From Cyanophora paradoxa CCMP329 (Eukaryota; Plantae; Glaucophyta): a stretch of DNA of 64,000 nt. Numbering within the stretch: the stretch's first letter is position 1; each line of letters starts with the position of its first letter. Below the pieces are notes generated by a model, which was not told the DNA's origin, ran no database searches, and saw only the letters and a list, made by a program, of their open reading frames with translations. Shown one piece after another: positions 42,964 through 57,400 of the stretch. A program made the position numbers and the translations under genes. The stretch is taken from contig QPMI01000614.1 of the NCBI GenBank assembly GCA_004431415.1, forward strand, positions 1 to 64,000, in the 5' to 3' direction.

Positions 42964-44656
42964 TCAGGCGGGGAGTTCCTGGTAGGGGGCGGAGCCCTGG
43001 AGGACGAGCTCGAGGAGGCGCTGGGCGAGGGGCGAGGCGGGGTGCGCGGCGCAGAGGCCCTCGATGGCGGCGAGGCGCTCGAGGTACGCCTCGCACTCCG
43101 ACGCCAGCGCCCCCAGCACCTCCCGCGTCCGCCCGTGCGCCTCCAGCCGCTCCCGCATCTCCGACTTCTGCGCCCCCGCCCGCGTCGGCCGCCAGCCGGC
43201 TCTCGGGAGGGGCGCGGCGCGGCGCCGCCGACCAGCAGGGCGATCAGGTTGGCCATCTGCGGCGGGGCGCGCGCGCCGCTGAGGCCGGTCCCGGCGCGCG
43301 CGCCGCGGCGCAGAGGGCCCGCCTCTCACCTCGGCGAACTCCTCGTGCTGCCGCGAGGCCCCCGCGCCGCCTCCCTCCCGCTCCGGCGCCGGCGCCGGCG
43401 CGGGTGCAGGGGCCGCCTCGGGGGCGTCGAGGGAGGCGCCCGACGAGGGGGCCCCCGCCGCGCTCGACGGCAGCGAGCGCGCCGTGGAGGCCTCCGGCGC
43501 CGGCGCGTGGCCGCCCAGCGCCGACGGCGGCCGCCCGGGCGAGCTCGCCACCTGGCTGCCTGCCGGGCCGCTCGCTGGCGCCGGCAAGGGGGCAGGCGCG
43601 CGCGCCAGCCGCACCGCTGTAGCTGCGCAGGCTCTCCACGTCTGCGGGCGAGCGGTCGGGGAGAGGAGGGGCGGCGATGGGGGCCGGCGGGCGCGCCTGC
43701 GAGGGCCAGCTTGGGGGCGACGGCCTGGGAGCGCGTGGGGAAGGGGGGCGAGCTCTTCTGCTTCGGCAGGAGCCCGATCGCCTCGACCTTGTTGGGGAGG
43801 AGGTGGCTGCTGAGGCCGCCCTGCTGCCCCGAGCCGCGCGCGTCCGCCCCCATCGCCCGCTTCTTCCTCTGCTCGAAGACCCCGAGGCCCGTGGGCGCGG
43901 CGCCGGCTCCGTGGAACTGCGGCCCGTGAGGCGGGCAGGCGGGCGGGCGGCGGAGGCGCGCCGGGGGCGGGCCTTCTCGTAGTATGAGCGGAAATATGTC
44001 AAAAACTGGCGAGAGATGAGGCGATGTAAGCTATGAGATTGAGATGAGAGAGACCAAGTGGACGATGCGATGGGCACCTCGATGCATGCAGCGAACTGGC
44101 CTGCGCAAGCGGGTCACCGATGTGCACCTCGGCAGTGCATTCGGGGGCTGGGCACCCTTCGAAAGGGCCTGCAGAGGCACAGGCCGCAAGTCCAGTCGCC
44201 GCATCGCCGTGTCCAATAGGCGCAGATTTTGCAAGTTCTCCTCCGGCGTCCGCGCAGTGTACAGCAGCCGCGACAGCGGGACCGCCTTCGGGTGGAGCAT
44301 GTTCAGGCTGCGCGCCCGTCAGCTCGAGTCGAACCGGCCGAACCGTGAGCTCTGCATTCTTGCAAGCACACACATTTCGCAGAACGCGATCCCGTCCTGC
44401 GATCCCGGGGTCGACAAAACCGCCGCCGACGCGGCCGGGCGACGGCCGGCGGCAGTTTAGGCTGGGCTGCATTAATGGCAGTTTAGGCGGCAGTTTTACA
44501 CACCTGAAGCTGCTCTATTTTGATATAGTCGGCGTCCAGCAGCCCATTCAGCCACTGCAGCGCCTGCAAGCGTTCCGGTCAGAGCGTTCAGCAGCGAGGC
44601 CGGGGCGAAATCAGCACCTCCGATCGGCCGTGGATTGGGCGCTCGAAACGGGCCAT
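42964..44656 (-). CDS. Divergent RP/EB (EB1-like) microtubule end-binding protein
   Basis: CH domain GRSE|ALQWLNGLLDADYIKIEQLQ|DGIAFCE..NMLHP..NLQNLRLL. C-terminal EBH-like ECEAYLERLAAIEGLC...LAQRLLELV. Confidence 0.8.
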
Positions 44657-44999
44657 CCGACGACGGAAGCGTGCACCGCTCGCTTTTGAAGAGCAGATGC
44701 AGCGGCTGCTGCCAGCGCCTCTGCGAAGAAGTTCACGGCCAGCCTCCGAGCGCTTTCGTAGCGGCGAAGGGGACTGAATGTGCCGCGCGCGCCTATAGCG
44801 CAATAGCTTGTAGCAGTCCAAAGGCGTTGAGAACTGGCGGGTTCGAAATCAGCACCTCCGAGCGCCCGTGGATTGGGCGCTCGAAGCTGGCCATCCGACG
44901 ACGGAAGCGTGCACCGTGCGGCGAAGGGGACTGAATGTGCCGCGCGCGCCTAAAGAGCAATGGTTTGTAGCAGTCCAGAGGCCTTGAGAACTGGCGGGT
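44606..44999. repeat. Tandem duplication of promoter and first coding exon (A 44606-44678 / A' 44844-44916; B 44761-44841 / B' 44918-44999)
   Basis: Two pairs of about 70-80 bp near-identical direct repeats read directly. Confidence 0.9.
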
Positions 45000-45035
45000 G
45001 CTTGAACCGAGGAGTTGCTATACCCTGGCAAAACG

Positions 45036-46686
45036 ATGTCAGCCGGCGGCGCCCCCGCGCCCGGCCCCCAGCCGGGCGAGGTTTACATCGGCAGCGAAGG
45101 GCGCATCGTGTCGGCAGTCCGCTTGATGTCCGCCGCCCGTTCCCGCAACTGCTCTGCGCCGGCTAAGGATCTCGCAGTGCGCAGACGCCCCTCGAGGTGC
45201 TCCCGATGGAATTTTCAATGGTGCGAAGCTTTGCGAAGGCTTAGTTGAAGTCGGAGCGCTTCTCGCCGCCTAGTAGCCCTGTGTCCACGCTCCGGCCTCA
45301 CGCCCGGACGGCTTAGCTAGAGAATCGGAATCAAACAAACAATCGCCCCGCCGAAAAGCGCCGCGCTCGTCGCGAGCTGCAACGTGTTAATCACCTTGCA
45401 GGTGTTCTTCTCGGCCGTGAGCCTCCACGACTTCGCAAGGGAAGGTAGCTTCGCTGGCGATGCCTCCGATTCAGAGTGTGTGTGTTCCAGGCCGAGCTCA
45501 CTGTCAACTGCGTCAGATACCACCCGGGAGCTTGTCGTCAAGCACGGCGGGCTCACGGCAGTCATTCACCTGCTGCATTCTGGCCAGGCGGACCTCGCCA
45601 CGGTTGCTTCCCACACAGTGCTGACCCTGGCCACTGACCGTACGCCCCCGAACCTATGTGCTCCCTTACCTCTCTGACGTCTTCCTTGTCCAGCTAAGCT
45701 GCGCCTGGTCATGGGGGAGTCACCAGGCTAGTTGGCCGTGTCTCATGCTTAACGTGCATGTCACTGACTTTGTTGCCTGTAGACTTGATCCCAGCACTTG
45801 TCGGGCTTGTGGGCCCTATTCGAGCCGGTGACAGCTTCTACTGGAACAACGCGTTGCTGGAAGCAGCGACTGGAGCATTGCAGAATCTATGTATGCCTTG
45901 AACCTAACAGTCTCTAACTTGACTCTAAGCATATAGCTAGCTATAGTCCGAGTCCGACGGTGCTCTTTGCTCTAAAGATGCTGATATCCTTGCAGGCGCG
46001 CACACACCAGGAGTCGATGACCAACGTGTGTGGCTGCTTACTACGCATTTGCAAAACGTCTGAAATGAGCTGAACCCAATTTAACGCAGAGCACTCCTCT
46101 AGGAGCGACCGCCGAATGCGAGTCCATGATGCTGGGGCTGTGCAGCGACTTTCGACCCTCTTGGCTAGCAACGAGACCACCGTGCCAGTGAAGCGCAACA
46201 CGCTGTGGGCGCTCTGCAACCTCTCTATGCATGGTGCGCATACAGAAGCTCTTGCGTGCGATGTCTAAACAGGGAATAGAGAGGATTGCAAGGACTGTGG
46301 CTGACAAGGCCTTGGACCCGATTCTTCGCATCATCTTCAACAGCTATGCTCCCCCCCCAGTAGACGCTCAGGAGCAGGTCCAATGCTGTTCTGCATTCAG
46401 CAATCGTACCTGCTTCTTACCCGTCCTTGGCAGATGGAACTAGAGAGCGTTGCCCTTTTCTGCCTAAACTCCGCTGCCATTCGAGGTGGCCGGAGGGATA
46501 TTGTGAAGAGGGACCCTCGCCTCCTCCAGGTACATCCTGTGCACTGATATGTTCTCTTTTGCCCCCTTCCTAACGTCAGTATCTATCCCATTGCAGCGCC
46601 TCTCTGAGCTGGAGGGATCTCAGGACCTCAGGGTCCGAACTGCAGCGAGCGAACTCCTTGCCCCTCTCCGCGGGAAGGGCCGATGA
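45036..46686 (+). CDS. Armadillo-repeat protein
   Basis: RELVVKHGGLTAVIHLL, ATGALQNL, RMRVHDAGAVQRLSTLL, NTLWALCNLS. Many short introns. Confidence 0.75.
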
Positions 46687-46902
46687 GCATCCCTGAGTGC
46701 TCTGTCTAGCCATGCCCTTCCTTGCTGTGTCTTAGCTAGGTATAGCCCGTAGGCCCCTCAACTTTGTACAGATCTACAGATCGCGATCAAAACCATAATC
46801 GCTCGAAGCGAAGCCGCGCGAGCCCATGTACATGTGCACTGCCCGGCTGCAAGACTGAAGACGAGTACCCCCCCGGAGAAGCCGGCACCCGAGCGGCACA
46901 CC

Positions 46903-47444
46903 ATGGTTCGCCCTCTTATAGATCCGCCGAAGCAGGACGGCCCTCCTCCGGGCGGCTTCAAGGTCATCAAGTTCCAGCGGAATCTGCCGACCGGGGGCCC
47001 GTCCGCCCTGGCGCTCTTCGGCTTCTTCGGCGCTATGTGCGTCGGCGGCCTTGCAGTTGTCGCCCACTACAACCAGCAGGCGTCCCGGTGCGCAGCACAC
47101 CTGGCGCACCGCGCGGCATGCCCGCGGCCTCTGGCTTCCGTTCACTTTCTGCCGCGGCAGGGCACTCGGTGATGTCCAGATTCTTCGGTGCGCCTCAGCG
47201 AAGCTGCGCACCATTGTCATGTCGTAAGCCTCGCCGCAGCACCCCAGACATCCTCTACGACAAGGAGCTCAGCGCCTTCAAGCAGTCGATGGACATCGTT
47301 ACCGAGGGCCGGTGCGTGTTAGCTCATTTGCGTAGGTTCCAGTCGCATCGCACCCCGGCACGATGCTGAATGCACACCGGCTTGCTCAGGAGGCGCACCC
47401 TCGCTGGCCTGAAGGCGCAGGCGGAAGTCACGAAGCCTGAGTAG
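46903..47444 (+). CDS. NDUFA13: NADH dehydrogenase subunit B16.6 / GRIM-19
   Basis: KQDGPPPGGFKVIKFQRNLPTGGPSALALF followed by a TM segment. Three GT-AG introns restore the frame to TAG at 47444. Confidence 0.9.
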
Positions 47445-47929
47445 ACGGCACATCTCTGTGTGATTAGTTTCGTTAGATTGTCTTGTATAACAATTGAATT
47501 TCCTCGCATATGCATCCTGCCTTGCCTGGCGTGCCCTTTTTAGGCGCTAAGGCGAGCTCGAGATCTAGAAGATCTAGATTAGAGATGTGAATCCAGAGCA
47601 TTTTGGATTCCAGAGCATTTGTCGGTTTCAGAGCTTTTGGTTTGACTTTCATTCATGATCAGGTTGGTTCTGATGTTCGCTAGCGGCTAGCCTGAGCTAG
47701 CAGCACATCATGGCATCTGTGATCCACCGGGCTACAATGAGACGTTACTAACGGAATAATCAGACTAGAGTAATGGTACATGTGCACAGGTACAGTACAA
47801 GCATCTGCAAAAGCAGACAAGCAGGCATCTGCAAAAGCGGATAGCGTGGATAAGAGCTAACTTTGTTACACTAGCTGTGTAAAAAAGAGCCAGCGAAGAG
47901 AAAAAAGCAAACGGTCGAAACAATCTCGT

Positions 47930-50903
47930 TTACAAAAGCTCTGAAGCGAGCTTTGCCAGCGACGAACGCTCCCCCTTCTCCAATCTGTATACAAGCAAGA
48001 GTAAGGGAAAATCTGACAGAAATCCGTGACATAGGACGTACGTAATGTGGGCGTAGCATGCCTGGCCCCGCATACGCGAGATGAGAAAATGCAAGCCATT
48101 GGAGAAGCGGTCCAAGTACGGCGTGTCAATCTAAGACATAAAGGTGAGCATCACTACAACAGATCAGAAAATGAAAACCCCGACCTGCTGCACGTCGCCA
48201 GTGAAGATAATCTTCGTGCCCTCACCAGCGCGAGTAATGATGGTCTTGACCTCAAGAGGTGTGAGGTTCTGAGCCTGGAGCAAATCTTAGCTTTCATATG
48301 AGGATGTCAAAATGTGAACAAAAGGAGGACCTCATCAACGATGAAAAAGCACTCCTGCAGGGACCGGCCGCGAATGTATGCGAGCTGCGAGAGACTCTCA
48401 GCAAGGAGGCGACATTTCGCTTCTGGGTCAAGGCAGACCGGCGTGATCACAAGCTTCTCGGAATTGACGACGTCCTTGCCAGTGCTCTCGCCACCGTTTT
48501 TGCTCTTCTTCTTCGAGGAAGAGTCGCCCTCACCCGCAAACTAGAGACACTGGAGTGAGGTGGAGGCACTTGGGTGCTGGAGTTGGGGGTTTACCTGGTG
48601 CTTGATCACTGCGAGGTTGTCGTAGAGCGGCTGCATGTACGGATCGATCTTGGCGTTCATGTCGCCTGGAAGATACCCAAGATCACGATTGCTCAAAGGG
48701 ACGATCGGGCGAGCCAGATAGATCTGCAGGCAAGTATGATGGAAAGCTGAATTCTCGGTGTGGGGGGCCTGCCTGCTGGTACTTCGCGTGCTTCTGCAGA
48801 GCCGCCGCCAGGGCCAGGAGAGTCTTGCCCGTGCCGGCACTGCCGGAGATCGACTGCGCGGAGCTCAGCGTCGCCGAGGCAGGCGGCGCAGCAGGGCATG
48901 CCACGAGTGTGATCTTGTCGTTCAGGAGGTGGGAAAGTGCGAAGGCTTGCTCGGCGTTGCGCGGGCTGATTCGGCTTGCGGGTTCTTTCGCCACGCGGAC
49001 GTACGCGGCGAGCTCCTCGTCGTAGTAGGCGAGCACAGAGCGCGATGGCCCCTTCAAGATGAAGTTCTAAGAGGGGCGTGAGCGGGGATAAGAGGCCAGT
49101 CTCGGGGGGCGGGCGCGCCTCGTTGGCCGTCGGGTCGGAGATGAGGTGCTCCAGCTCTTCGGCGGCGACCTGATGCACCGCTTAGAGGGCCGTCGGGCAT
49201 CACGGGGCTACGGGGCTGTCGGCTCACATGAAAGGGCTCCCTGTAGAAGTCGTCGATGACGCTGGACGGCACGTTCTCGATGGTACGCTTGCCAGTGAAC
49301 TCCTGCATCACGAGAGAAGTATCGCGATCCGTGTTGTAATCTGCGGAGGGGCGCGGGGGTCAGAGGCGTCGCTGTTACCCTCCGAAAAGGGCCCTCGCAC
49401 CCTGGGCCTGCAGACCGAGCGCGCGGGCTTTCATTCGCAGGTTCACTGCAGGAAAGGGGCCTCAGGACCTGCCCCCGAGCTCGGAGGCTTCAGGAGGTCC
49501 GACGGGGCGCACCGTCCTTGGAGACGAGGACGATGGGCTGCGCTGAGCCCGCCTTCTCCTGTTCGAGCATCTCCTGCTCCCGCTGCATCTGGTACACAAC
49601 CTGTCGGATGGGATGCTTGAGCGCGAGCAGCATAGCCCACGAAACCAAGAAAAGAGGCACGTTGAGAATCCTGTGGTCCGCAGTATTCTCGTGAAAGACC
49701 CGCTGGGGGCGCTGTCAAGACAAGCGAGAGCGCTCGTGAACAGCACTGAAAATACCGCAAAGACTTCGCTCGCGATAGATTCCTTCTCCGTCAGCGCAAC
49801 ACGAATGCGGCCGTGCCTGCGCGAGGCAGGTGGGTGCATCGCACGTAGATTCGGGATGAAAAGGAAACAAACCCTTCGCCAATGCGCACCCCAGCGCCTG
49901 TGCACGCAGTAAGAGGCAAGAAAAGAAACCAGCGATGACTGGCAGACCATAGAACAGCTCGTCGCTGCCTTCGGACTGGCGTTTGGACGCCATTTCCGTG
50001 GCGACGCAAAGGTCGTCAATCTTGCGCAGGAACTCTCGCGCGTGCCAATTGATCAGCTCATTGCCCTTCTTGAACCGGTCGAGCTCTTCGAGGACCGCTA
50101 AGACAGGGGCGAGTGAGCCGTGCAGGGGGACTTGGTGCGGCCAGGCGGGCCCGGCGGGCTGATGGGCGGCGCACTGATTGGGATCGCCAAGTCGTTATCC
50201 GTAAAACTGAAGATACATGAGCTGTCGTGCAGAATGACGTTCGTGTCCTGAATGAAGTAGGGAGCAAGCGTCAGATGCGCTACCGAATCTAGATCTGGCG
50301 TGCGCGGCGCGACGGAAGACCGTGCGTACAAGAACAAAGCACTTCTTGCGCTTCTCTTTCGCTTGCGCCGAGCTGTCAGCCGACGCCGCTGTCGCCTTGG
50401 TTTTCGTTGAAGCTTTCCGAGAGGTGGTTGACTTGCGCGCGCGCGCGGCGGCGGCACGCTTAGTCTTCGGCGCTTCGAGCTTCTCCTCGTCCGCCACCAA
50501 CTCTGGCGCTGCGGCGGCGCGCGTCAGCAGCGGAGCTCACTAGGCGCACAACCGACCTGGAGCTCACTGGGCTCAATGACAGACGGCTCCTTCGTGCGCT
50601 TTATCTTCGCCAGTGCCTTTTCTAGAAGTGGGCTGAGCGGCTGCTGGCTCCGCTTTGGCGCCTCGGCGACGGCCTCCCCTGCTTCGACACACGTCACATC
50701 GCTCCGGGAGCGACACACGGGGATGATTGCAACGTACCATATACGTACAGAGGGCGAGGGGGCGCCGGGCTCGTCGGCGAAAACCGCCGGGGCGCCTTGT
50801 AGGAACTTTTTTGAAGGCTGATGCCGCGGAATGGACAGGCCAAGCTTAAAGGCGTCGTTCGGCTGGATTCAGTGGCAGGAACTGCTAGAATGAAGCCGGC
50901 CAT
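47930..50903 (-). CDS. PIN-PhoH fusion (PhoH2/YlaK-type RNase plus ATPase/helicase) with predicted plastid transit peptide
   Basis: PIN: FVL|[31 protein letters not shown]|VNLRMKA. PhoH: [37 protein letters not shown]|AQNLTP, GDVQQ|ID, GERSSLA. N-terminus [10 protein letters not shown]. Confidence 0.93.
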
Positions 50904-50959
50904 GCCTCTGTCGGCGTCGCGCGTGCAGCCGCAAGCCGCCTTTGCGGGTACACGCTCCA

Positions 50960-51642
50960 ATGCTCCGCCAGGCCTCACGGGCGCTCTCGGGCCTCGGCGA
51001 GCAGCGCTTCGGCGCGCTGCAGCGCTCGTGCGCGATCTGCGCCGCACGCCGCGCGAGCGGATCGCCGAGCCCGAGCGGATCGCCGAGCCCGAGCGGATCG
51101 CCCGGTGCGCGCGCTGCGCTGCCGTCTGATTCAGATTGTGCACGTTGTCGCGTTCAATCGGTTTACCCGCGATCCTGTTTGCTGCTGCGCCCCGAATTTG
51201 CGCAGGCGCGCGCTCACGGACCCCGCGGATGCGCAGGCGCAACACTGGTGGAGAACGTCGACAGCACACGCATTGATGAGTCCGGTGCCGCGCCGCCCCG
51301 CCTTGCATCCGGTGCGCGTCCGATTCAATCTCGTCATGATCCGCGGCCTGAACGCCGAACGCTCGCTTCAGACGTGACGCCGGAGGTCCTCGACGAGCTC
51401 TTGAAGCACAGAAAGCCGAGCGGTCTGAACCCCTTCGCGCTGCAGGGCCCGGGGCGCCGGCCTTCCCACCACCTGATGTGAGCGCAGGGAGCCCGCGGCC
51501 GCCGCCGCCGCAGTACACCGACGACCAGGGGCAGCCCGCCGGCGCCGGCGACGAGAAGCCCGGAGCGGAGGGCCCCGGCACGCGCAGCGGGGCGGACTCG
51601 ACGAAAGGCGGCGAGCCGGGCGCTCTCTCAAACTCCGGCTGA
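50960..51642 (+). CDS. Small hypothetical protein, possible mitochondrial presequence
   Basis: MLRQASRALSGL... start. Exons ATLVENVDSTRIDES|DVTPEVLDELLKHRKPS|GSPRPPPPQY...NSG*. Confidence 0.55.
51054..51102 (+). repeat. 18-bp tandem repeat (GAGCGGATCGCCGAGCCC) x about 2.7, likely intronic
   Basis: Read directly. Confidence 0.85.
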
Positions 51643-51949
51643 CGGGCTGCGTATCATAGTATGCATACGTGGCATCGCGGCATGGCGAATTCGAATTCGA
51701 AGCCCTGCATGCGCAGCTGCAAGCGCGGCGTCCCGCGGCCGTGCCCCGGATCACTCTGACAGTGTTGTCTCAGATGTATATAAATAATCCATGCACATGT
51801 GCAGCCTGGCAGTCCACGGGCCCGAGCCCCGGCCCTAGGCCTGCCGGCGCCGGCCGGGGCCCGGCCCGGCGGGGCGCGGCCATGGCACCGGTGAGGCCTG
51901 CGGCCGGGGCCCCACGGTATCCTCATTGGTAGCTACAGAAACGGGGCGC

Positions 51950-51973
51950 GGGGGGGGGGGGGGGGGGGGGGGG
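51950..51973 (+). repeat. Poly-G tract (about 24 nt) between convergent genes
   Basis: Read directly. Confidence 0.9.
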
Positions 51974-52191
51974 CCACTGCTCGAGGGACGGCCAGGGATA
52001 GCATATTGTTGTCACAATTAGAAAACTAGCGCGCGCGCAATTGCACAATTAGCGCACACGTGCGAGCAGCGACGACGGGTGCTCAACGATCGCTTCCGAT
52101 TCGAGAATACATTACATCGGAGACGAGGGCCGAATCCTTGAAGAGTCGTGCACGGGCCGCCGGGACGGATGCAGCGACTTGCTCAGCTAGC

Positions 52192-54239
52192 TCAGAAGGG
52201 CATGTCGATGTTGACGTTGTCCCAGTTGTCGAAGTTCTGCCCCGGCTGGCGGGCGGGCGGTCAGAGCCCTCACAGATTCGCCCCCTCGAGGCTTGAGGCG
52301 ACCTACACGAGCTCGAGGCGCGTACAGGGGGCAGCGGGGGCGGCGAGGGCGCACCTGGCCGCTTGTGGACGACAGCTCGGACTCCCGGAGGCGCTGGCCC
52401 GAGCCCTGCTGCATGCCGCCCTGCGACTGGAAGCCGGCCTGGCCCTGGAAGCTGCCCTGGCCCTGCGGCTGCGAGGAGCGCTGTCCCTGCCAGCCCTGGC
52501 CCCTCTGCTGCTCGGCCCGCTGCACGGAATCCGGGGTAAGGGGCGCCAGTGTCGAGAGGCGAGGGCGACGCACGCTGAAGAACGTGTTACCGAATGCGCC
52601 GAAGCCGCCTCCGCTCGTAGCCCGCTGCCATCCCTGCACGTGAACGTGCCCAGTCGGGCTGCCGGCTTGGCCGGGCGACAGCTGCAGAAAACTTCAGATC
52701 TCACCTGCGGGATGTTCGGCTGGCCCCAGCCGCCCTGCTGCTGCTGTCCGCCCCAGCCGCCCTGCTGGCCACCCCAGCCACCCTGCTGGCCGCCCCAGCC
52801 TCCTTGCTGGCCGCCCCAGCCGCCCTGCTGGCCGCCCCAGCCTTGCTGCGGGCCACCGAAGCCCTGCAGAATAGTGGGTCCTCAAGCAGGCGGAGGTCAA
52901 GTGCGACTCGGCGGCGATCAGGATACGCACGCCCTGGAAGCCGCCCTGCCCGAAGCCCTGCGCACGAAAACACCAATCTGCAAGTCAGAAGGGGCTCGCA
53001 CGCTCGTGACGTGACAACATACGCCCTGGAAGCCCTGGCCGCCGAACCCCCCGAAGCCTGTCCGAAAGCATGTTAGCGGTGCGGGGCCCGCGAGGCTGCG
53101 GTGGGCGCACCGCCAGGCCCGCCTCCAAGCTGCCGGCCGAGGCCGCCGCCTGAGACGCGTGAGACGGGCCTCGAGTGTGCGGGAGGCGGGACTCGCACCG
53201 GGGAGCCCTGGCGTGGCGTACTGCGCGAAGGGATCGTCCGGCTGGGGCAGCACCATCAACGGGCCGCCGCCAGGGACGCCGCCCGGGAACGCCTGCAGCG
53301 GAATTCTCTGAGCCCGACACCGGCACGGCACACACCGCGCGACGTGCTCGGGACCGCACCAGGGTGGCCGGGTCGCTAGGGTTCAGGCGGTTCGGGTCCA
53401 CACGGCCAGCCTCCTGCGAAGCGCAATTCAGTCCAACCCTGAAATATTCGAGGCCGGTGCCGCACGATCTCGCGACGGATGAACTCCTGCATGCGCGTGT
53501 CATAGCGCGGCGGGAATTCGACGCCGCATCGCTCCGACTCACCTCCATGGCCTGCGCCTTCCGCGCGTGGTACTGCGCGCCCATGCGCCGCATCAGGAGA
53601 AACGGGCGAGGAAGCGGCGGAGTCGATGTGTATAAACCAGCGCGCCTGCGCGGGAATGCCGCCGCCGATGACGGCGTGGGGCGTGCGCTTCCGCTGCTCC
53701 AGCCTCGCCATGCAGATCTACGAAGCGAGCGTCAGGAAGCGAGGCTGCCGCGCGTCGACGAAAGGCGCGCCTCGACGGCCTGCTCATGGGTGACTCCGGC
53801 TGCGCGGGCTCCTCGTGAGCAACGATGGCGCAAAGTGGCGGGGCTGCACGCACGAGGGATCAGGATCTGCCAAGCCAAGCGAGGACGGCGAGTCAGATGC
53901 AGCGCGCGTCGCGTACAAGCGCTCGGAAAACGCGCGGCGCGTGAAATAAGCAGCCCAATGCGCAAGAGCCAACTCTACGAGAACTACGGGCTAGCGCTCC
54001 ACGTGCACGCGAAGCAATCCGATCCGCGGCAGACCTCGAAGCCGGCGCTCGTCGGGATGACCTCTGCGGCCTGGCGTTCGGCCTCCCTGTTCGCAAGCGC
54101 CGGCTTCAGCCAGGTGCCCACTCAGGGTAAGCCCGGGAGAGCTCGGGAGAGCTCGGGAGAGCAGCCGGCGCGCGTGCGCGCGTCACCGCAGGGCCGCTCA
54201 CCGGATGAGCTCCTGTCCGCTCTTCTGATAGGATGCCAT
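52192..54239 (-). CDS. Gly/Gln-rich GWG/FG-repeat protein of unknown function
   Basis: Start MASYQKSGQELIR. Microexons GFGGFGGQGFQG and GFGQGGFQG, then about 6 GGWGGQQ-type units at 52720-52845. Last exon NFDNWDNVNIDMPF* has all G/C-ending codons. Confidence 0.72.
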
Positions 54240-54430
54240 CGTCGACGTCGGATCGTGTGCGGGGTGGCGGTCGGTGCGATCGTTGGCTTTGTACCCGGGT
54301 CGCACCACTGGCCGTACCGGTACCCGCCCGGCAGCCTTCCTCTGTTTTTCGCGATCGGTCACAGGAGCCCGCGAGCAGCTGCAGCGCGAGCATATTGGCC
54401 TGGTGCTTTTGGAAACATACAGGCCGCGCG

Positions 54431-57400
54431 CTAGGCTCCGGGGCTGCTTCCCGCCGCAGGTGCTGGAGGGGACGCCGCGAGGATGGCTGTGGCGGCCGCC
54501 GCGCCGTGCCCCTTCTGTCCGCGGTGGCCTCGCGAGTGACGCCGCCGGTGCGGCGGCCGGCCCGTCGAGTCCGCGGCGCCGACCGCCTGTGGCGAGAGGC
54601 GCGGCCCGCGCGGCTGGGGCGGCTCCGGCTGGAGAAGCCGGGCGCGCGCTGCGGCTGGGGCGGGGTGTGTCGCGGGTGGTGGTGCTGGGGTGGGGTGGGA
54701 GGGTGCGGCGGCGGGCCGTCGGGCGGGTGGGCGAGCTGCGGGCGGGGCGGGGAGGAGTGGTGCCTCTCGCCGGGGGCGTGGCCGGCGTGGCGCTGCCCGC
54801 GCTGGGGCCCTCGGGAAGGGCGGCGGCCACTGGGGCGGGCCCCGGCGCGCCCGCGGGAGGCTCGGCTCGAAGAAGGCCGCCGCGAAGCTTGAAGAGGCGG
54901 CGGCCTGGCGCCTCAGGAGGGGCGCGAGGGGCGCCGGCGGGCTGGCGGCGGCGCGCTCGCCCGGGGCCCAGCTGGCCGTGAGCGCCATCGCGTCCCGCAG
55001 GGTCACCCACGCGCTCCGCCTGCGCGGGCGGCGTCGGGTCTCACAGCGGGCTCTCGCGGCGCGCGGGGGGCGGACCAGTGGGCGGCGGGCGGCGGGCCGG
55101 GCAGCGGGTGGAGGGTCGTGGGAGGCGCCACGGGCGGCGTCGGGTCCGGGCGGGACGGCGCAACCGGTGCTGGAAGCATATCACCTTCGGGCCTGCGGCG
55201 TGCATGAGAGAGGAGCGCGGGGCTAGCGGCGGGCGGGCTGGGCGGACGCGGCGGCCGGGGCGGGGGCGGGGGAGGAGGACGGGGAGGAGGTGTCGGCGCT
55301 GGAGGGAGGGGACGGGCGACGCGGAGCCCGGCGAGGAGGAGGGGCCGGAGCGGAGGCCGGGGCCGGCGCGGGCTTCGGGGGGCTGGAGGGCGAGCTGGGG
55401 CCACTCCGCGCGGGAGAGGGGCGCCGCCGCCGGGGCCCGGTGGGCTCGGGGTGGGAGGGGGAGGCGGGACGCTCGAGGCGCGCCTTCTCGGGTGAGACGA
55501 CCGCCGCCCACGACGAGGCGGCGCCCGCGGCGCCCTCCGGCCCCGCCCCCGCGCCCCGCCGCCTGGTGCGCCCAGAAGGCCGGCCCGCCGCCGCTGCTGT
55601 TGTGAGCGCCGGCGGGGCCGGCCGCGGCTTGGGCGCGGGAGCTTGCGCGGCGGCGCGGCGGCTGGTCCGCGGGGCGGGGCCGACGCGCGGAAGCGGCGCG
55701 GAGCGGGTGCGTCTGCGGTCGACGAGAGACCAAGCCGCCGCCGGGTCGTCATCCGCCGCCGCCGCCGCTGCTGCTGCTGCTGCTGCGGCCGCCGCCTCGG
55801 CCGCCTGTGCTTCGTGCTCCTCGCTCGATCCCGCGTCCTCGTCCTCCTCGTCTTCGCCGTCCCCCTGCCGTCCTCGTGGTGCGCATCGTCCTCCTCGCCG
55901 TCGCCGTGCTCCCGGGGGCCCCGGCGGGGGCGGCGGGGCGGCCTCGGCGGGGCCGGCGGCGGTGGCGGCTGTGCTCGCCGTCGCGCTCCCGCTCCCGCAC
56001 GCCGACCCGCTCTCCTCCTCGCTCTCCAGCCTGCGCCCCGCCGCGTCGGCCCCCGCGCCCGCCCCCCGCGCCCGGGAGCCGGCACCCGCTGTCGCTGGCG
56101 TCGCTGGTGGCGACGGCCGCTGCGGCGCCCTCCACGCCGAGCTCTGCGCGGCCGCCGTCAGCCGGCGCGGCGCACAGCGGCGCGCGGGCCGGGCGCACTC
56201 TCGAAGGGGAGGGCCGCCAGCCGCGGCGGGAGGGGCCGCTCACCCACCAGCTCCCCTACGGCCCCGCCCCGCCGTCAGCGCCCCGCAAGGCAGACGGGGC
56301 GGCCGGCGCACCGCTCTCGTAGTACTGGAGGCAGAGGCGGGCGGCGCGGGGCTCGGGGGGTGGCCCCTCGGCGCCCTCAGCCGCGGGCGACGCGGGGCGC
56401 GCGTCGCAGGCGTAGATCATGAGCCCCTCCGGCTTGCCCATGCGCCACGTTCCCCGGTACCTGCCGCCCCGCATCGGCCCCGCGGAAACAGCTGGACCGG
56501 CCGGCGCCGCGCACCGCTCGCCGCGCTCGTTCGCAATGGTGCCGCTCACGAGGTAGCCGGCCCGCCACTCCCCCTCCCGCACCGTCCCGTTCGGATCCGT
56601 CCGCTTTCCGCGCGCGAAGGAGCCTGCCAGCCCGCCCCGGCTCGCCCTCGCGCTCGGCCCCGCTCAAGCTGCGCGGCGCACCGTCCTTGGGGTTCCACGT
56701 CCCCTCGAAGAGCGTGCCGTCCGCAAGGCGGCGCCGGCCTGCGAGGCCCGGGGTGTCAGCGGTGCAAGGGGCCTTCAGGCGCGGGCCTGTGCGAACCGGA
56801 GACAAGGACGCCGCCGGAGAACTCGCCCTCGAGCAGCTCCCCGTCGGAGGTCACCTGCCGCCGGCGCCCCCTCAGGTGGGGCGCGCGGCCGCGGCGGGGC
56901 GGGGCGGGGCGGGGCGCGGCGGGGCGGGCCTTGGAGCAGCCGGGCCCGTGGAGCTTGCCGTCGGACTCGCGGAAGGTGCCCTGTACGCGCGTGCCGCCGC
57001 ACGAGATCGAGCCCCGCACCAGCTAGCGAGGGCCCGCGTCAGATCAGCGGCTCGCCCCGCCACGGCGCGGCCGCCACCTTGTTCCTGACGAACTCGCCCT
57101 CCTCGCGGCGCCCGTCGGGGAAGAGCTGCACGAAGCCGTCGTCCAGGGCGATCGGCCCCGGGGGCGGGGTTGGGGTGGGCGCCTCACCTTGAGGCAGTTC
57201 TTGCCACTGAGGGCCCCGTCCACCCACGTGCCTGCGTCCTTGCCCCCGTCGGGGTATAGGTACACGCCCTGCGCGGCGCGGCGCCCTCGCTTTCAGCTGC
57301 AGGGCGTGGGGCGAAGCGGAGGGGACGGGGAGGCGGCGGGCCTTGCCGTGGCGGCGCCCGAGGCGCAGCTCGCCGATGTAGCGGTGCTTATCGTACTGCG

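Follow-up and report, generated by a model that had tools for sequence, protein, structure and literature searches.

Published work describes PhoH2 from bacteria, archaea, and phages (PMC5499597, PMC7390352). The mycobacterial protein, which is encoded with PhoAT, has been shown to unwind RNA in an ATP-dependent 5'-3' direction and to act as an RNase; helicase/RNase activity and a hexameric ring are known for the mycobacterial enzymes only (PMC7390352). Other PIN-PhoH proteins include YlaK of Bacillus, SYNW1946 of Synechococcus WH8102, and Wcw_0503 of the Chlamydiota. The gene for SYNW1946 shares a genomic island with a DNA-binding partner, and the protein restrains a phage. The PIN_4 family, with its active site of four acidic residues, also comprises SMG6, SMG5, and Swt1 (PMC5499597), and the PhoH ATPase domain is also found in single-domain PhoH/YbeZ proteins (E. 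coli PhoH, NF007827; cyanophage PhoH). Our literature search, which combined PhoH or YlaK with Cyanophora, red algae, Chlamydiae, and plastid, retrieved nothing on an algal PIN-PhoH.

Here we describe a PIN-PhoH gene of the glaucophyte Cyanophora paradoxa, located in a window of 64,000 nucleotides (contig QPMI01000614.1). As in mycobacterial PhoH2 and the family model NF053827, the encoded protein comprises PIN_4, a middle region, and PhoH over its whole length, and it has the COG1875-type PIN-PhoH architecture in common with Bacillus YlaK. The acidic residues and Walker motifs of the mycobacterial enzyme are shared, and by analogy 5'-3' unwinding and cleavage are presumably shared as well. 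In contrast to actinobacterial PhoH2, to which it is about 31% identical, the algal protein has a 150-residue leader and is encoded by a nuclear gene with introns and no phoAT-like partner upstream. The absence of phoAT is common to Wcw_0503, but neither this protein nor SYNW1946 is among the closest hits of the algal protein. SMG6, SMG5, and Swt1 differ in that they lack PhoH, have a eukaryotic ancestry, and function in nuclear/cytosolic mRNA surveillance; their kinship with the algal protein goes no further than the PIN_4 family. The single-domain PhoH/YbeZ proteins have the same ATPase domain (100.7 bits) but lack the PIN domain and middle region; the "cyanobacterial PhoH" against which the initial annotation had set the protein belongs to this different subfamily. 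We assign a probability of roughly 0.6 to the reading that algal PhoH2 is an ancient horizontal acquisition from a non-cyanobacterial source and now serves as a plastid-targeted RNA helicase-nuclease.

The gene is identical to a public gene model of 622 residues (tig00021352_g20690.t1, EukProt EP00741 Cyanophora paradoxa; hereafter P0001), which a phmmer search with a single exon (window:48776-49066:-) matched at 100% identity. Every base matched when P0001 was mapped onto the window, from the start ATG at 50903 to the end of the stop codon at 47930, and these are the limits that had been proposed from the sequence beforehand. Where a dozen or more host-style introns had been noticed, the exon map gives 19, of 48-82 nt, comprising 16 of the GT-AG type and three of the GC-AG type (Table 1). 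The junctions of all three GC-AG introns align to bacterial proteins without gaps, as illustrated by intron 12 (ANE/NFILK in the alga, PNENFILR in bacteria); introns 13 and 14 follow ITLV and KYQQ, respectively. The 16 codons of intron 13 are missing from P0001, such that residues 1-97 of the exon query pair with 81 residues of the record. The gene is monocistronic, with its own leader exons on the upstream side, and is adjoined at a distance of 800 bp by an exon of the eukaryotic gene GRIM-19/NDUFA13. The initial annotation's proposal of a bacterial PhoH2 in an algal nucleus is thus borne out by the 19 spliceosomal introns and this neighbor: bacterial-type PhoH2 is an intron-rich gene of the C. 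paradoxa nucleus. The GC content of the gene stretch is below that of its flanks. All full-length analyses used the database record P0001, whereas exons were searched singly and were joined only for the mapping check and for calculating GC by codon position.

Table 1. Positions of the PIN-PhoH (PhoH2) gene and its features in the window.
Feature	Position	Strand	Basis
Whole PIN-PhoH (PhoH2) gene; 20 exons, 19 introns	47930..50903	-	exact mapping of P0001
Exon 1, residues 1-55, transit-peptide-like	50738..50903	-	sequence
Exons 2-3, residues 56-152, Lys/Ala-rich basic linker	50330..50678	-	sequence and AlphaFold model
PIN_4 RNase domain, residues 150-315, exons 3-11	49336..50338	-	Pfam PF13638 and conserved columns
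Intron 12, GC-AG, donor GCGCGC, 52 nt	49067..49118	-	exon map
Middle region between PIN and PhoH, residues 316-400	48971..49335	-	alignment, NF053827
PhoH P-loop ATPase / RNA helicase domain, residues 401-608, exons 13-20	47975..48970	-	Pfam PF02562
Intron 13, GC-AG, donor GCATGC, 48 nt, in frame, directly upstream of Walker A	48854..48901	-	exon map
Walker A GSAGTGKT, residues 427-434	48821..48844	-	alignment and exon map
Intron 14, GC-AG, donor GCAGGC, 49 nt	48724..48772	-	exon map

Both domains are complete. On the whole protein, PIN_4 scores 114.7 bits over profile positions 1-131 of 132 and PhoH scores 161.6 bits, so that the profile search suggested at the outset places the two in one protein. 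When exons were searched singly, the Pfam models matched them in colinear pieces (profile positions 1-28, 29-68, and 91-115 for PIN_4; 24-45, 49-90, 108-127, and 127-158 for PhoH). The four acidic positions of the PIN active site, D153 (DTN), E180/E181 (EELD), D264 (DHRI), and D298 (SKD), are invariant or nearly invariant columns in the alignment with bacterial PhoH2, as are both Walker motifs. Walker A has invariant G430, G432, K433, and T434, and the conserved Walker B is VDEAQN (residues 543-548). The intact PIN domain fused to a full PhoH ATPase that had been read from the sequence is therefore present as described. The middle region, for which Pfam offers no separate model, is conserved with bacterial PhoH2 and has a confident beta-rich fold in the AlphaFold model. 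Few gaps are needed to align the protein to bacterial proteins of 441-466 residues, with both domains in one polypeptide. NF053827 ("RNA 5'-3' helicase PhoH2") matches lone exons only in weak pieces and the whole protein colinearly at positions 2-423 of 427. Its score of 233 bits is below the curated cut-off of 680 bits; since a bona fide bacterial relative (P0028) likewise reaches only 251 bits, the model is specific to the actinobacterial branch and does not delimit the wider family. The AlphaFold model shows a confident fold for residues 148-622, and among solved structures 3b85, which is the PhoH domain from Corynebacterium PhoH2, matches best in both sequence and fold.

Upstream of this core, the N-terminal leader has the sequence features of a plastid transit peptide. 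Residues 1-55 are rich in Ser, Thr, Pro, and Arg, contain a single acidic residue, and start with MAGF, in agreement with the Ser/Pro/Arg-rich extension first noticed there. Exon 1 is in phase, with donor G/GTACGT and acceptor CAG; its assignment is based on the BRAKER model, the consistency of splice phase, and analogy. In the linker that follows, one short helix is predicted (residues 72-82), and the end of exon 3 opens the PIN domain (KKCFVL). With the exception of this helix, pLDDT is below 50 throughout residues 1-143. Import into the plastids of glaucophytes and red algae is marked by Phe or another bulky aromatic residue within the first ~10 positions (PMC4510345, PMC2222254, PMC7038456). 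The Cyanophora leader has Phe at position 4, similarly to the proven cyanelle leaders MAGFVSIVPL and MAFVAPIVAV, and this early Phe is accompanied by an acid-poor, Ser/Thr/basic-rich, and unstructured N-terminal region. Among orthologues, Phe occurs within residues 2-10 of eight of the nine credible N-termini. With a chance of 0.30 for each, this would arise at random with a probability of about 4e-4, assuming independence. The early-Phe leader of glaucophyte and red algal type that had been proposed for the Cyanophora protein recurs in the orthologues. Because the extension opens with the Phe-type signal used by these algae, import into the plastid (muroplast) is the most likely destination, and on this leader pattern PhoH2 of Cyanophora probably acts in the plastid.

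Other features of the leader are also shared. A motif, [KR]RS[KQ]xLSxxL, is common to the leaders of Cyanophora, Cyanoptyche, and orthologue P0104. Leader length is 150 residues in Cyanophora and 70-260 in orthologues, which far exceeds that of a typical transit peptide; the Lys-rich part could have another use or be a nuclear signal.

The gene is not confined to Cyanophora. Full-length glaucophyte orthologues with N-terminal extensions were found in Cyanoptyche and in two further glaucophyte-like sequences, and red algal orthologues are present in the unicellular Galdieria (two species), Cyanidiococcus, Porphyridium, Timspurckia, and Rhodosorus. These originate from independent genomes and transcriptomes. 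Green algae, plants, and algae with secondary plastids provided no orthologue among the best 120 hits of each protein list. The initial annotation had taken PIN-PhoH to be purely prokaryotic; in fact, public databases already contain this small algal clade, one member of which is named "protein YlaK [Porphyridium purpureum]", and the acquisition is consequently not specific to Cyanophora. Algal PhoH2 thus extends an established family by a new eukaryotic member and is an old bacterial gift rather than a one-off. Shared intron positions were considered as proof of common descent and proved uninformative, given that the sole intron of the Galdieria gene lies nine codons from the nearest Cyanophora intron.

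Maximum-likelihood analysis recovers the algal proteins as a single clade (UFBoot 92 / SH-aLRT 94), within which glaucophytes (100/99) and red algae (98/100) are each monophyletic, as expected of the old acquisition that had been surmised. The phylogeny that had been called for also places this clade inside a bacterial PhoH2 subfamily: a larger clade (96/99) encloses the algae together with Planctomycetota, Marinimicrobia, and FCB-group genomes, and quick trees agree. Support for Planctomycetota as sister group is 50/90 in the careful tree and 94 in one quick tree, while another quick tree leaves the position unresolved, and we claim no donor phylum. The outgroups were PIN-PhoH matches from a plasmid collection, which contained no full-length cyanobacterial PIN-PhoH; the tree includes neither cyanobacterial (SYNW1946) nor chlamydial (Wcw_0503 type) sequences.

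Similarity searches indicate the same bacterial neighborhood. Three protein searches were made, over 5.8 billion proteins. The named top hits, and the 80 best-ranked among the more than 594 species hits from genomes, are 50-58% identical and come from Planctomycetota, Marinimicrobia, and further FCB/PVC groups; neither set includes a cyanobacterium or a chlamydia. The closest bacteria are Planctomycetota and Marinimicrobia, with 55-58% identity over the core (Pirellula staleyi, Rubinisphaera, and the Bremerella "PhoH family protein"). Identity to the Cyanophora protein falls to 49% in Bacteroides and 35-41% in Firmicutes YlaK. The Porphyridium orthologue bears the YlaK name; the Firmicutes proteins branch in the outgroup portion of the tree. 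The initial suggestion that the protein looked more like those of Bacteroidetes and spirochaetes than like cyanobacterial ones is correct as to the FCB/PVC type, with no cyanobacterium among the best hits, and needs amending as to the nearest relatives. Fibrobacterota and Bacteroidota relatives are also among the near relatives of FCB/PVC type. A virus was considered as carrier of the gene; however, PIN-PhoH proteins of viral contigs reach at most 49% identity, below that of bacteria, so that nothing points to a viral carrier.

Two alternatives concern the donor, and for both a sister relationship is unlikely on similarity ranking alone, since neither group is in the tree. The gene could derive from the cyanobacterium that became the plastid, in which case its planctomycete look would reflect the loss or replacement of PIN-PhoH in most modern cyanobacteria. 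Some cyanobacteria do encode PIN-PhoH, as SYNW1946 demonstrates, apparent plastid targeting common to two primary-plastid lineages is the usual pattern of endosymbiont genes, and a tree without cyanobacterial sequences leaves room for such an origin. However, cyanobacteria are missing from the top-ranked hits described above, and the known cyanobacterial copy, accompanied by a partner gene, is carried on a mobile genomic island and so does not count among conserved core genes; we regard endosymbiotic transfer as very unlikely. Alternatively, the gene may be part of the chlamydial set thought to date from the onset of plastid endosymbiosis. PIN-PhoH without phoAT is conserved across the Chlamydiota, which share the PVC superphylum with the Planctomycetota, the closest sampled relatives, and several chlamydial transfers are common to Cyanophora and red algae (PMC6704402). 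Against this, chlamydial proteins are likewise missing from the named top hits and the 80 best genome hits, and neither g20690 nor PhoH appears in those parts of the Cyanophora genome paper supplements, which list chlamydial transfers, that were available to us. A chlamydial donor is therefore very unlikely as well.

The remaining alternatives concern location and authenticity. A protein of bacterial origin could act outside the plastid, with cytosol, nucleus, and mitochondrion as candidate sites and antiviral defence or surveillance of RNA as examples of its function, if the Phe is coincidental or the start wrong. The long extension with its Lys-rich, NLS-like second half would suit such a role, and the homologue SYNW1946 restrains phage replication. 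Timspurckia and three metagenome-derived orthologues have no Phe in their first 10 residues, and the names PhoH, PIN, and YlaK are absent from the portions consulted of the cyanelle proteome supplements, from a study that covered mainly abundant proteins with older gene models. Conversely, early Phe recurs across deep lineages far beyond the chance level calculated above, the Phe motif separates plastid from mitochondrial precursors in these algae, and the first 55 residues have the composition of a typical transit peptide. Action outside the plastid is thus unlikely. Bacterial contamination or an assembly artefact, which could be suspected from the 55-58% identity of the core to bacterial proteins and the low GC of the gene stretch, is practically out of the question: it is already refuted by the intron structure, with 19 spliceosomal-type introns whose junctions are gap-free against bacteria, and also conflicts with the nearby GRIM-19 exon and the orthologues in independent algal genomes and transcriptomes.

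A toxin-antitoxin framing was also introduced initially, with reference to the mycobacterial protein. This framing is unsupported, as no partner is conserved upstream of the closest bacterial genes: among the 80 closest bacterial loci the upstream neighbor varies in size, strand, and sequence, and a co-transcribed phoAT-like partner was detected neither there nor upstream of the algal gene, although a diverged partner may exist elsewhere. That the gene has been retained for more than a billion years with no such partner argues that this PhoH2 subfamily is a housekeeping RNA enzyme, not a selfish toxin.

Our preferred reading, an ancient non-cyanobacterial acquisition targeted to the plastid, would entail the following history. 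A bacterium with PhoH2 of the subfamily now found mainly in Planctomycetota and Marinimicrobia, which judging by similarity was not the cyanobacterium that gave rise to the plastid, would have donated the gene to the common ancestor of glaucophytes and red algae. Spliceosomal introns and the N-terminal extension would then have been gained, followed by vertical inheritance. The precursor would be imported into the muroplast through its Phe-type signal. By analogy with mycobacterial enzymes, from which we infer its assembly, activities, and substrates, the mature protein probably forms a ring that uses ATP to thread and unwind RNA from 5' to 3' and would hand the single strand to a ring of PIN nucleases, with a likely role in plastid RNA turnover or quality control.

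Of the three primary-plastid lineages, two possess this conserved, intron-bearing, and apparently plastid-targeted PhoH2 clade. Few candidate factors for plastid RNA decay are listed for glaucophytes and red algae, and PhoH2 joins them as an uncharacterised enzyme. It would also be one more dated instance in which the plastid recruited a bacterial gene of non-cyanobacterial origin ahead of the split between these two lineages, with subsequent loss from the green line. Numerous bacterial genes with plastid leaders have been described in these algae, and the surprise is accordingly moderate. More speculatively, and with odds against it, PhoH2 may have been taken from a PVC/FCB-type bacterium at or near the time of the primary plastid endosymbiosis and have joined the ancestral machinery for plastid RNA decay, in effect as a ring-shaped helicase-nuclease "degradosome", kept by glaucophytes and unicellular red algae and replaced in green algae, plants, and multicellular red algae. 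If true, it would be a molecular relic of RNA handling in the first plastids and would add to the non-cyanobacterial contributions that helped to establish the plastid.

To our knowledge, none of the PhoH2 proteins of Planctomycetota and Marinimicrobia has been studied. They are encoded by stand-alone genes with no conserved partner and, at 441-466 residues, differ from the algal protein in having neither leader nor low-complexity inserts. The glaucophyte proteins are additionally distinguished from bacterial ones by a Lys/Ser-rich insert after VIKHQF.

The minus-strand gene encodes a 622-residue protein (database record P0001) that is a new eukaryotic member of the PhoH2 (PIN-PhoH) family, as judged by its architecture, colinearity, catalytic residues, and phylogeny. 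Reviews place the PIN-PhoH fusion in bacteria, archaea, and phages (PMC5499597, PMC7390352), and the initial annotation likewise treated it as confined to prokaryotes; this view is superseded by the orthologues in glaucophytes and red algae described here. Our literature search found no paper on algal PhoH2, though the proteins are already in public databases under automatic names.

A three-frame read of the minus strand between 47800 and 51000 revealed a series of short coding pieces with PIN and PhoH motifs. Separate stop-free pieces colinearly match positions 1-28, 29-68, and 91-115 of the Pfam PIN_4 profile and 24-45, 49-90, 108-127, and 127-158 of the PhoH profile. Splice sites were first read by eye. 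When one exon region was used as a phmmer query against 1.8 billion cluster representatives, P0001 was retrieved at 100% identity, with 16 in-frame codons of the query removed by splicing. This record, EukProt EP00741 Cyanophora paradoxa tig00021352_g20690.t1, is the basis of all full-length analyses; its contig name and BRAKER-style gene name agree with the 2019 Cyanophora assembly (PMC6704402). Mapped base-for-base onto the window, it falls into 20 exons; the 19 introns measure 48-82 nt, and 16 of them are GT-AG and three GC-AG. Gap-free alignment of the spliced protein to bacterial PhoH2 across the GC-AG junctions confirms them. At 3/19 (16%), GC-AG introns are far more frequent here than in eukaryotes at large, where about 1% is the norm. 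The other annotated isoform, t2 (P0239), is one alanine apart from t1, the difference lying in a tandem AAG/CAG acceptor, 3 nt apart, in intron 1.

Features of the PhoH2 gene and its surroundings
Feature	Window position	Strand	Basis
GC dip (0.47-0.72; flanks 0.75-0.83)	~44000-54500		500-bp windows
GRIM-19/NDUFA13 exon	46834-47172	+	Pfam PF06212, 37 bits
PhoH2 stop codon (end)	47930	-	P0001 mapping
Introns 12-14 (consecutive, GC-AG)	48724-49118	-	P0001 exon map
Exon query	48776-49066	-	phmmer
Glaucophyte leader motif (exon 2)	about 50600-50650	-	P0001 residues 66-82
Tandem acceptor, intron 1	50676-50681	-	t1/t2 comparison
PhoH2 ATG	50903	-	P0001 mapping
Three-fold direct repeat	51045-51100		

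Profile searching confirmed the complete PIN-PhoH fusion previously proposed, with PIN_4 matched almost entirely at residues 150-315 (114.7 bits) and PhoH at residues 401-608 (161.6 bits). When eight algal proteins were aligned with eight bacterial ones, the conserved columns took in the four PIN acidic positions (D153, E180/E181, D264, D298), Walker A (G430, G432, K433, T434), and Walker B (D544, E545). The residues needed for the nuclease and ATPase/helicase activities are all intact, and are conserved in at least nine algal species. AlphaFold models residues 148-622 with confidence and leaves 1-143 disordered apart from a short helix at 72-82. By sequence as well as by fold, the closest solved structure is the ATPase domain of Corynebacterium PhoH2 (3b85); full-length PhoH2 has no solved structure. 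P0001 falls short only of the narrow actinobacterial equivalog cut-off of NCBIfam model NF053827 (680 bits), scoring 233 bits in an end-to-end match (positions 2-423 of 427). A typical bacterial relative, P0028, also stays far under this cut-off (251 bits), so the model covers actinobacterial members specifically and does not delimit the family as a whole.

After itself, P0001 best matches long algal proteins: P0103 (760 aa, MMETSP), P0002 from Cyanoptyche gloeocystis (690 aa), and P0104 (728 aa). Next come hundreds of bacterial proteins, 441-466 aa long and 55-58% identical; those with names belong to an FCB-group bacterium, Planctomycetota, Marinimicrobia, KSB1, and Rubinisphaera. Cluster look-ups identified red algal members in Galdieria yellowstonensis (P0008/P0227), Porphyridium purpureum (P0052, annotated 'protein YlaK'), Cyanidiococcus yangmingshanensis (P0098/P0231), and Rhodosorus marinus (P0063/P0232). 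A profile of eight algal sequences placed ten algal clusters on top, followed by bacteria; new in this search were Galdieria partita (P0240) and two sequences from metagenomes. Timspurckia (P0260) emerged when the divergent Porphyridium protein served as query, and the named bacteria in that search are nearly all Planctomycetota (Pirellulales, Bremerella, Pirellula, Rubinisphaera). No orthologue from green algae, plants, cryptophytes, haptophytes, stramenopiles, or alveolates was among the best 120 matches of each search.

Some orthologues show individual peculiarities. The G. yellowstonensis gene (L086:3001-5314, JANCYU010000038.1) is interrupted once, by an intron of ~70 nt that follows residue 587 (..RPIVPL/SNRD..), a position matched by no Cyanophora intron. 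A 588-residue database variant, P0225, stops exactly at this site, presumably through intron read-through. The branch leading to Porphyridium P0052 is very long, at 1.5 changes per site. This protein also contains large inserts of low complexity and has a small deletion in the ..QIDxPYLD.. segment, which is otherwise conserved; relaxed or altered constraint may be acting on it.

Bacterial contamination is rejected by the 19 introns and the adjoining exon for GRIM-19/NDUFA13, a mitochondrial complex I subunit, which is convergent with the PhoH2 gene (3' ends about 800 bp apart). Cyanobacterial and chlamydial PIN-PhoH proteins exist (PMC5490813, PMC12038028); these were left out of the tree, and such donors are disfavoured solely by their absence from the similarity rankings. 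In a scan of one genome per bacterial species, neither group was among the best 80 of >594 matches, in line with the non-cyanobacterial affinity originally suggested. These 80 were mainly Planctomycetota and Marinimicrobia, with Fibrobacterota, Kiritimatiellota, Desulfobacterota, Ignavibacteriota, and KSB1 also present. The Bacteroidetes/spirochaete affinity suggested earlier gives way to these closer relatives. Elsewhere, identity to the algal protein is 49% for Bacteroides, 35-41% for Firmicutes YlaK, ~31% for actinobacterial PhoH2, and at most 49% for viral contigs.

Old transfer from bacteria agrees with the maximum-likelihood tree (63 sequences, 442 columns, LG+C20 PMSF, rooted on Firmicutes YlaK). 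The 13 algal sequences form one clade (UFBoot 92/SH-aLRT 94; 90% of bootstrap trees), within which glaucophytes (100/99) and red algae (98/100) are each monophyletic. Quick trees also recovered algal monophyly (93 with 103 rows, 84 with 63 rows). Algae group with Planctomycetota, Marinimicrobia, and two FCB-group genomes (96/99). The bacterial origin and the old age of the gene are upheld; Planctomycetota come out as a weakly supported sister of the algae (50/90). The simplest reading is a single transfer into the common ancestor of glaucophytes and red algae, then vertical descent. Algal PhoH2, probably organellar, adds one to the many bacterial genes known to have been recruited to primary plastids. 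Genome bins L009 and L011 (both labelled Candidatus Kuenenia stuttgartiensis) and L028 and L060 (both labelled Chitinophagaceae) group tightly with Pirellulales, L011 being almost identical to a Pirellulales bin, which suggests mis-binned contigs or recent inter-bacterial transfer.

All algal proteins carry an N-terminal extension of 70-260 residues that bacterial proteins lack. Among glaucophyte and red algal proteins, plastid precursors are distinguished by a Phe within the first ten residues, which cyanelle import requires (PMC4510345, PMC2222254, PMC7038456). The first Phe is at position 4 in Cyanophora, 8 in Cyanoptyche and Cyanidiococcus, 2 in P0103, 2 and 10 in two Galdieria species, 3 in Porphyridium and Rhodosorus, and 14 in Timspurckia (7 counted from the second Met). 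Eight of nine sequences thus have Phe in residues 2-10, which is unlikely by chance at 0.30 each (3.9% Phe in these proteins). Cyanophora PhoH2 starts MAGF, as does a cyanelle proteome protein (MAGFVSIVPL). In the Cyanophora protein, Ser, Thr, Pro, and Arg abound in residues 1-55, where a single residue is acidic; residues 56-150 form a basic, Lys/Ala-rich tract. The leader is of the plastid type first recognized, and the protein is probably organellar; the cyanelle proteome tables examined do not name it. Three of four glaucophyte sequences (Cyanophora, Cyanoptyche, metagenomic P0104) share the motif [KR]RS[KQ]xLSxxL, followed by a Lys/Thr/Arg-rich tract, within an otherwise unconserved leader. 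The motif coincides with the lone predicted helix of residues 1-143, and this region may be retained in the mature protein, for example as an RNA-binding tail, rather than belong to the transit peptide.

The toxin-antitoxin framing fares less well. In mycobacteria, PhoH2 and its small partner PhoAT come from one transcript (PMC7390352). The algal gene is monocistronic. The upstream neighbour varies in size, strand, and sequence across the 80 closest bacterial loci, and Chlamydiota PIN-PhoH is likewise without phoAT (PMC12038028). Members of this subfamily would thus seem to be enzymes that act on their own rather than toxins restrained by a neighbour. By analogy with mycobacterial enzymes, the mature protein would probably form a ring that binds single-stranded or 5'-tailed RNA; ATP would drive 5' to 3' translocation and unwinding, and the unwound strand would be handed to the PIN nucleases. 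Its plastid role may be RNA turnover or quality control.

Base composition differs along the window, which has a GC content of 0.70-0.82. The PhoH2 gene lies within a local dip, and its coding sequence has a GC of 0.59 and GC3 of 0.75. The very GC-rich flanks contain long ORFs in all six frames. The direct repeat, with a unit of about 18 bp (GGATCGCCGAGCCCGAGC), lies ~150 bp upstream of the start codon and may represent either a simple repeat or an element of the promoter region.
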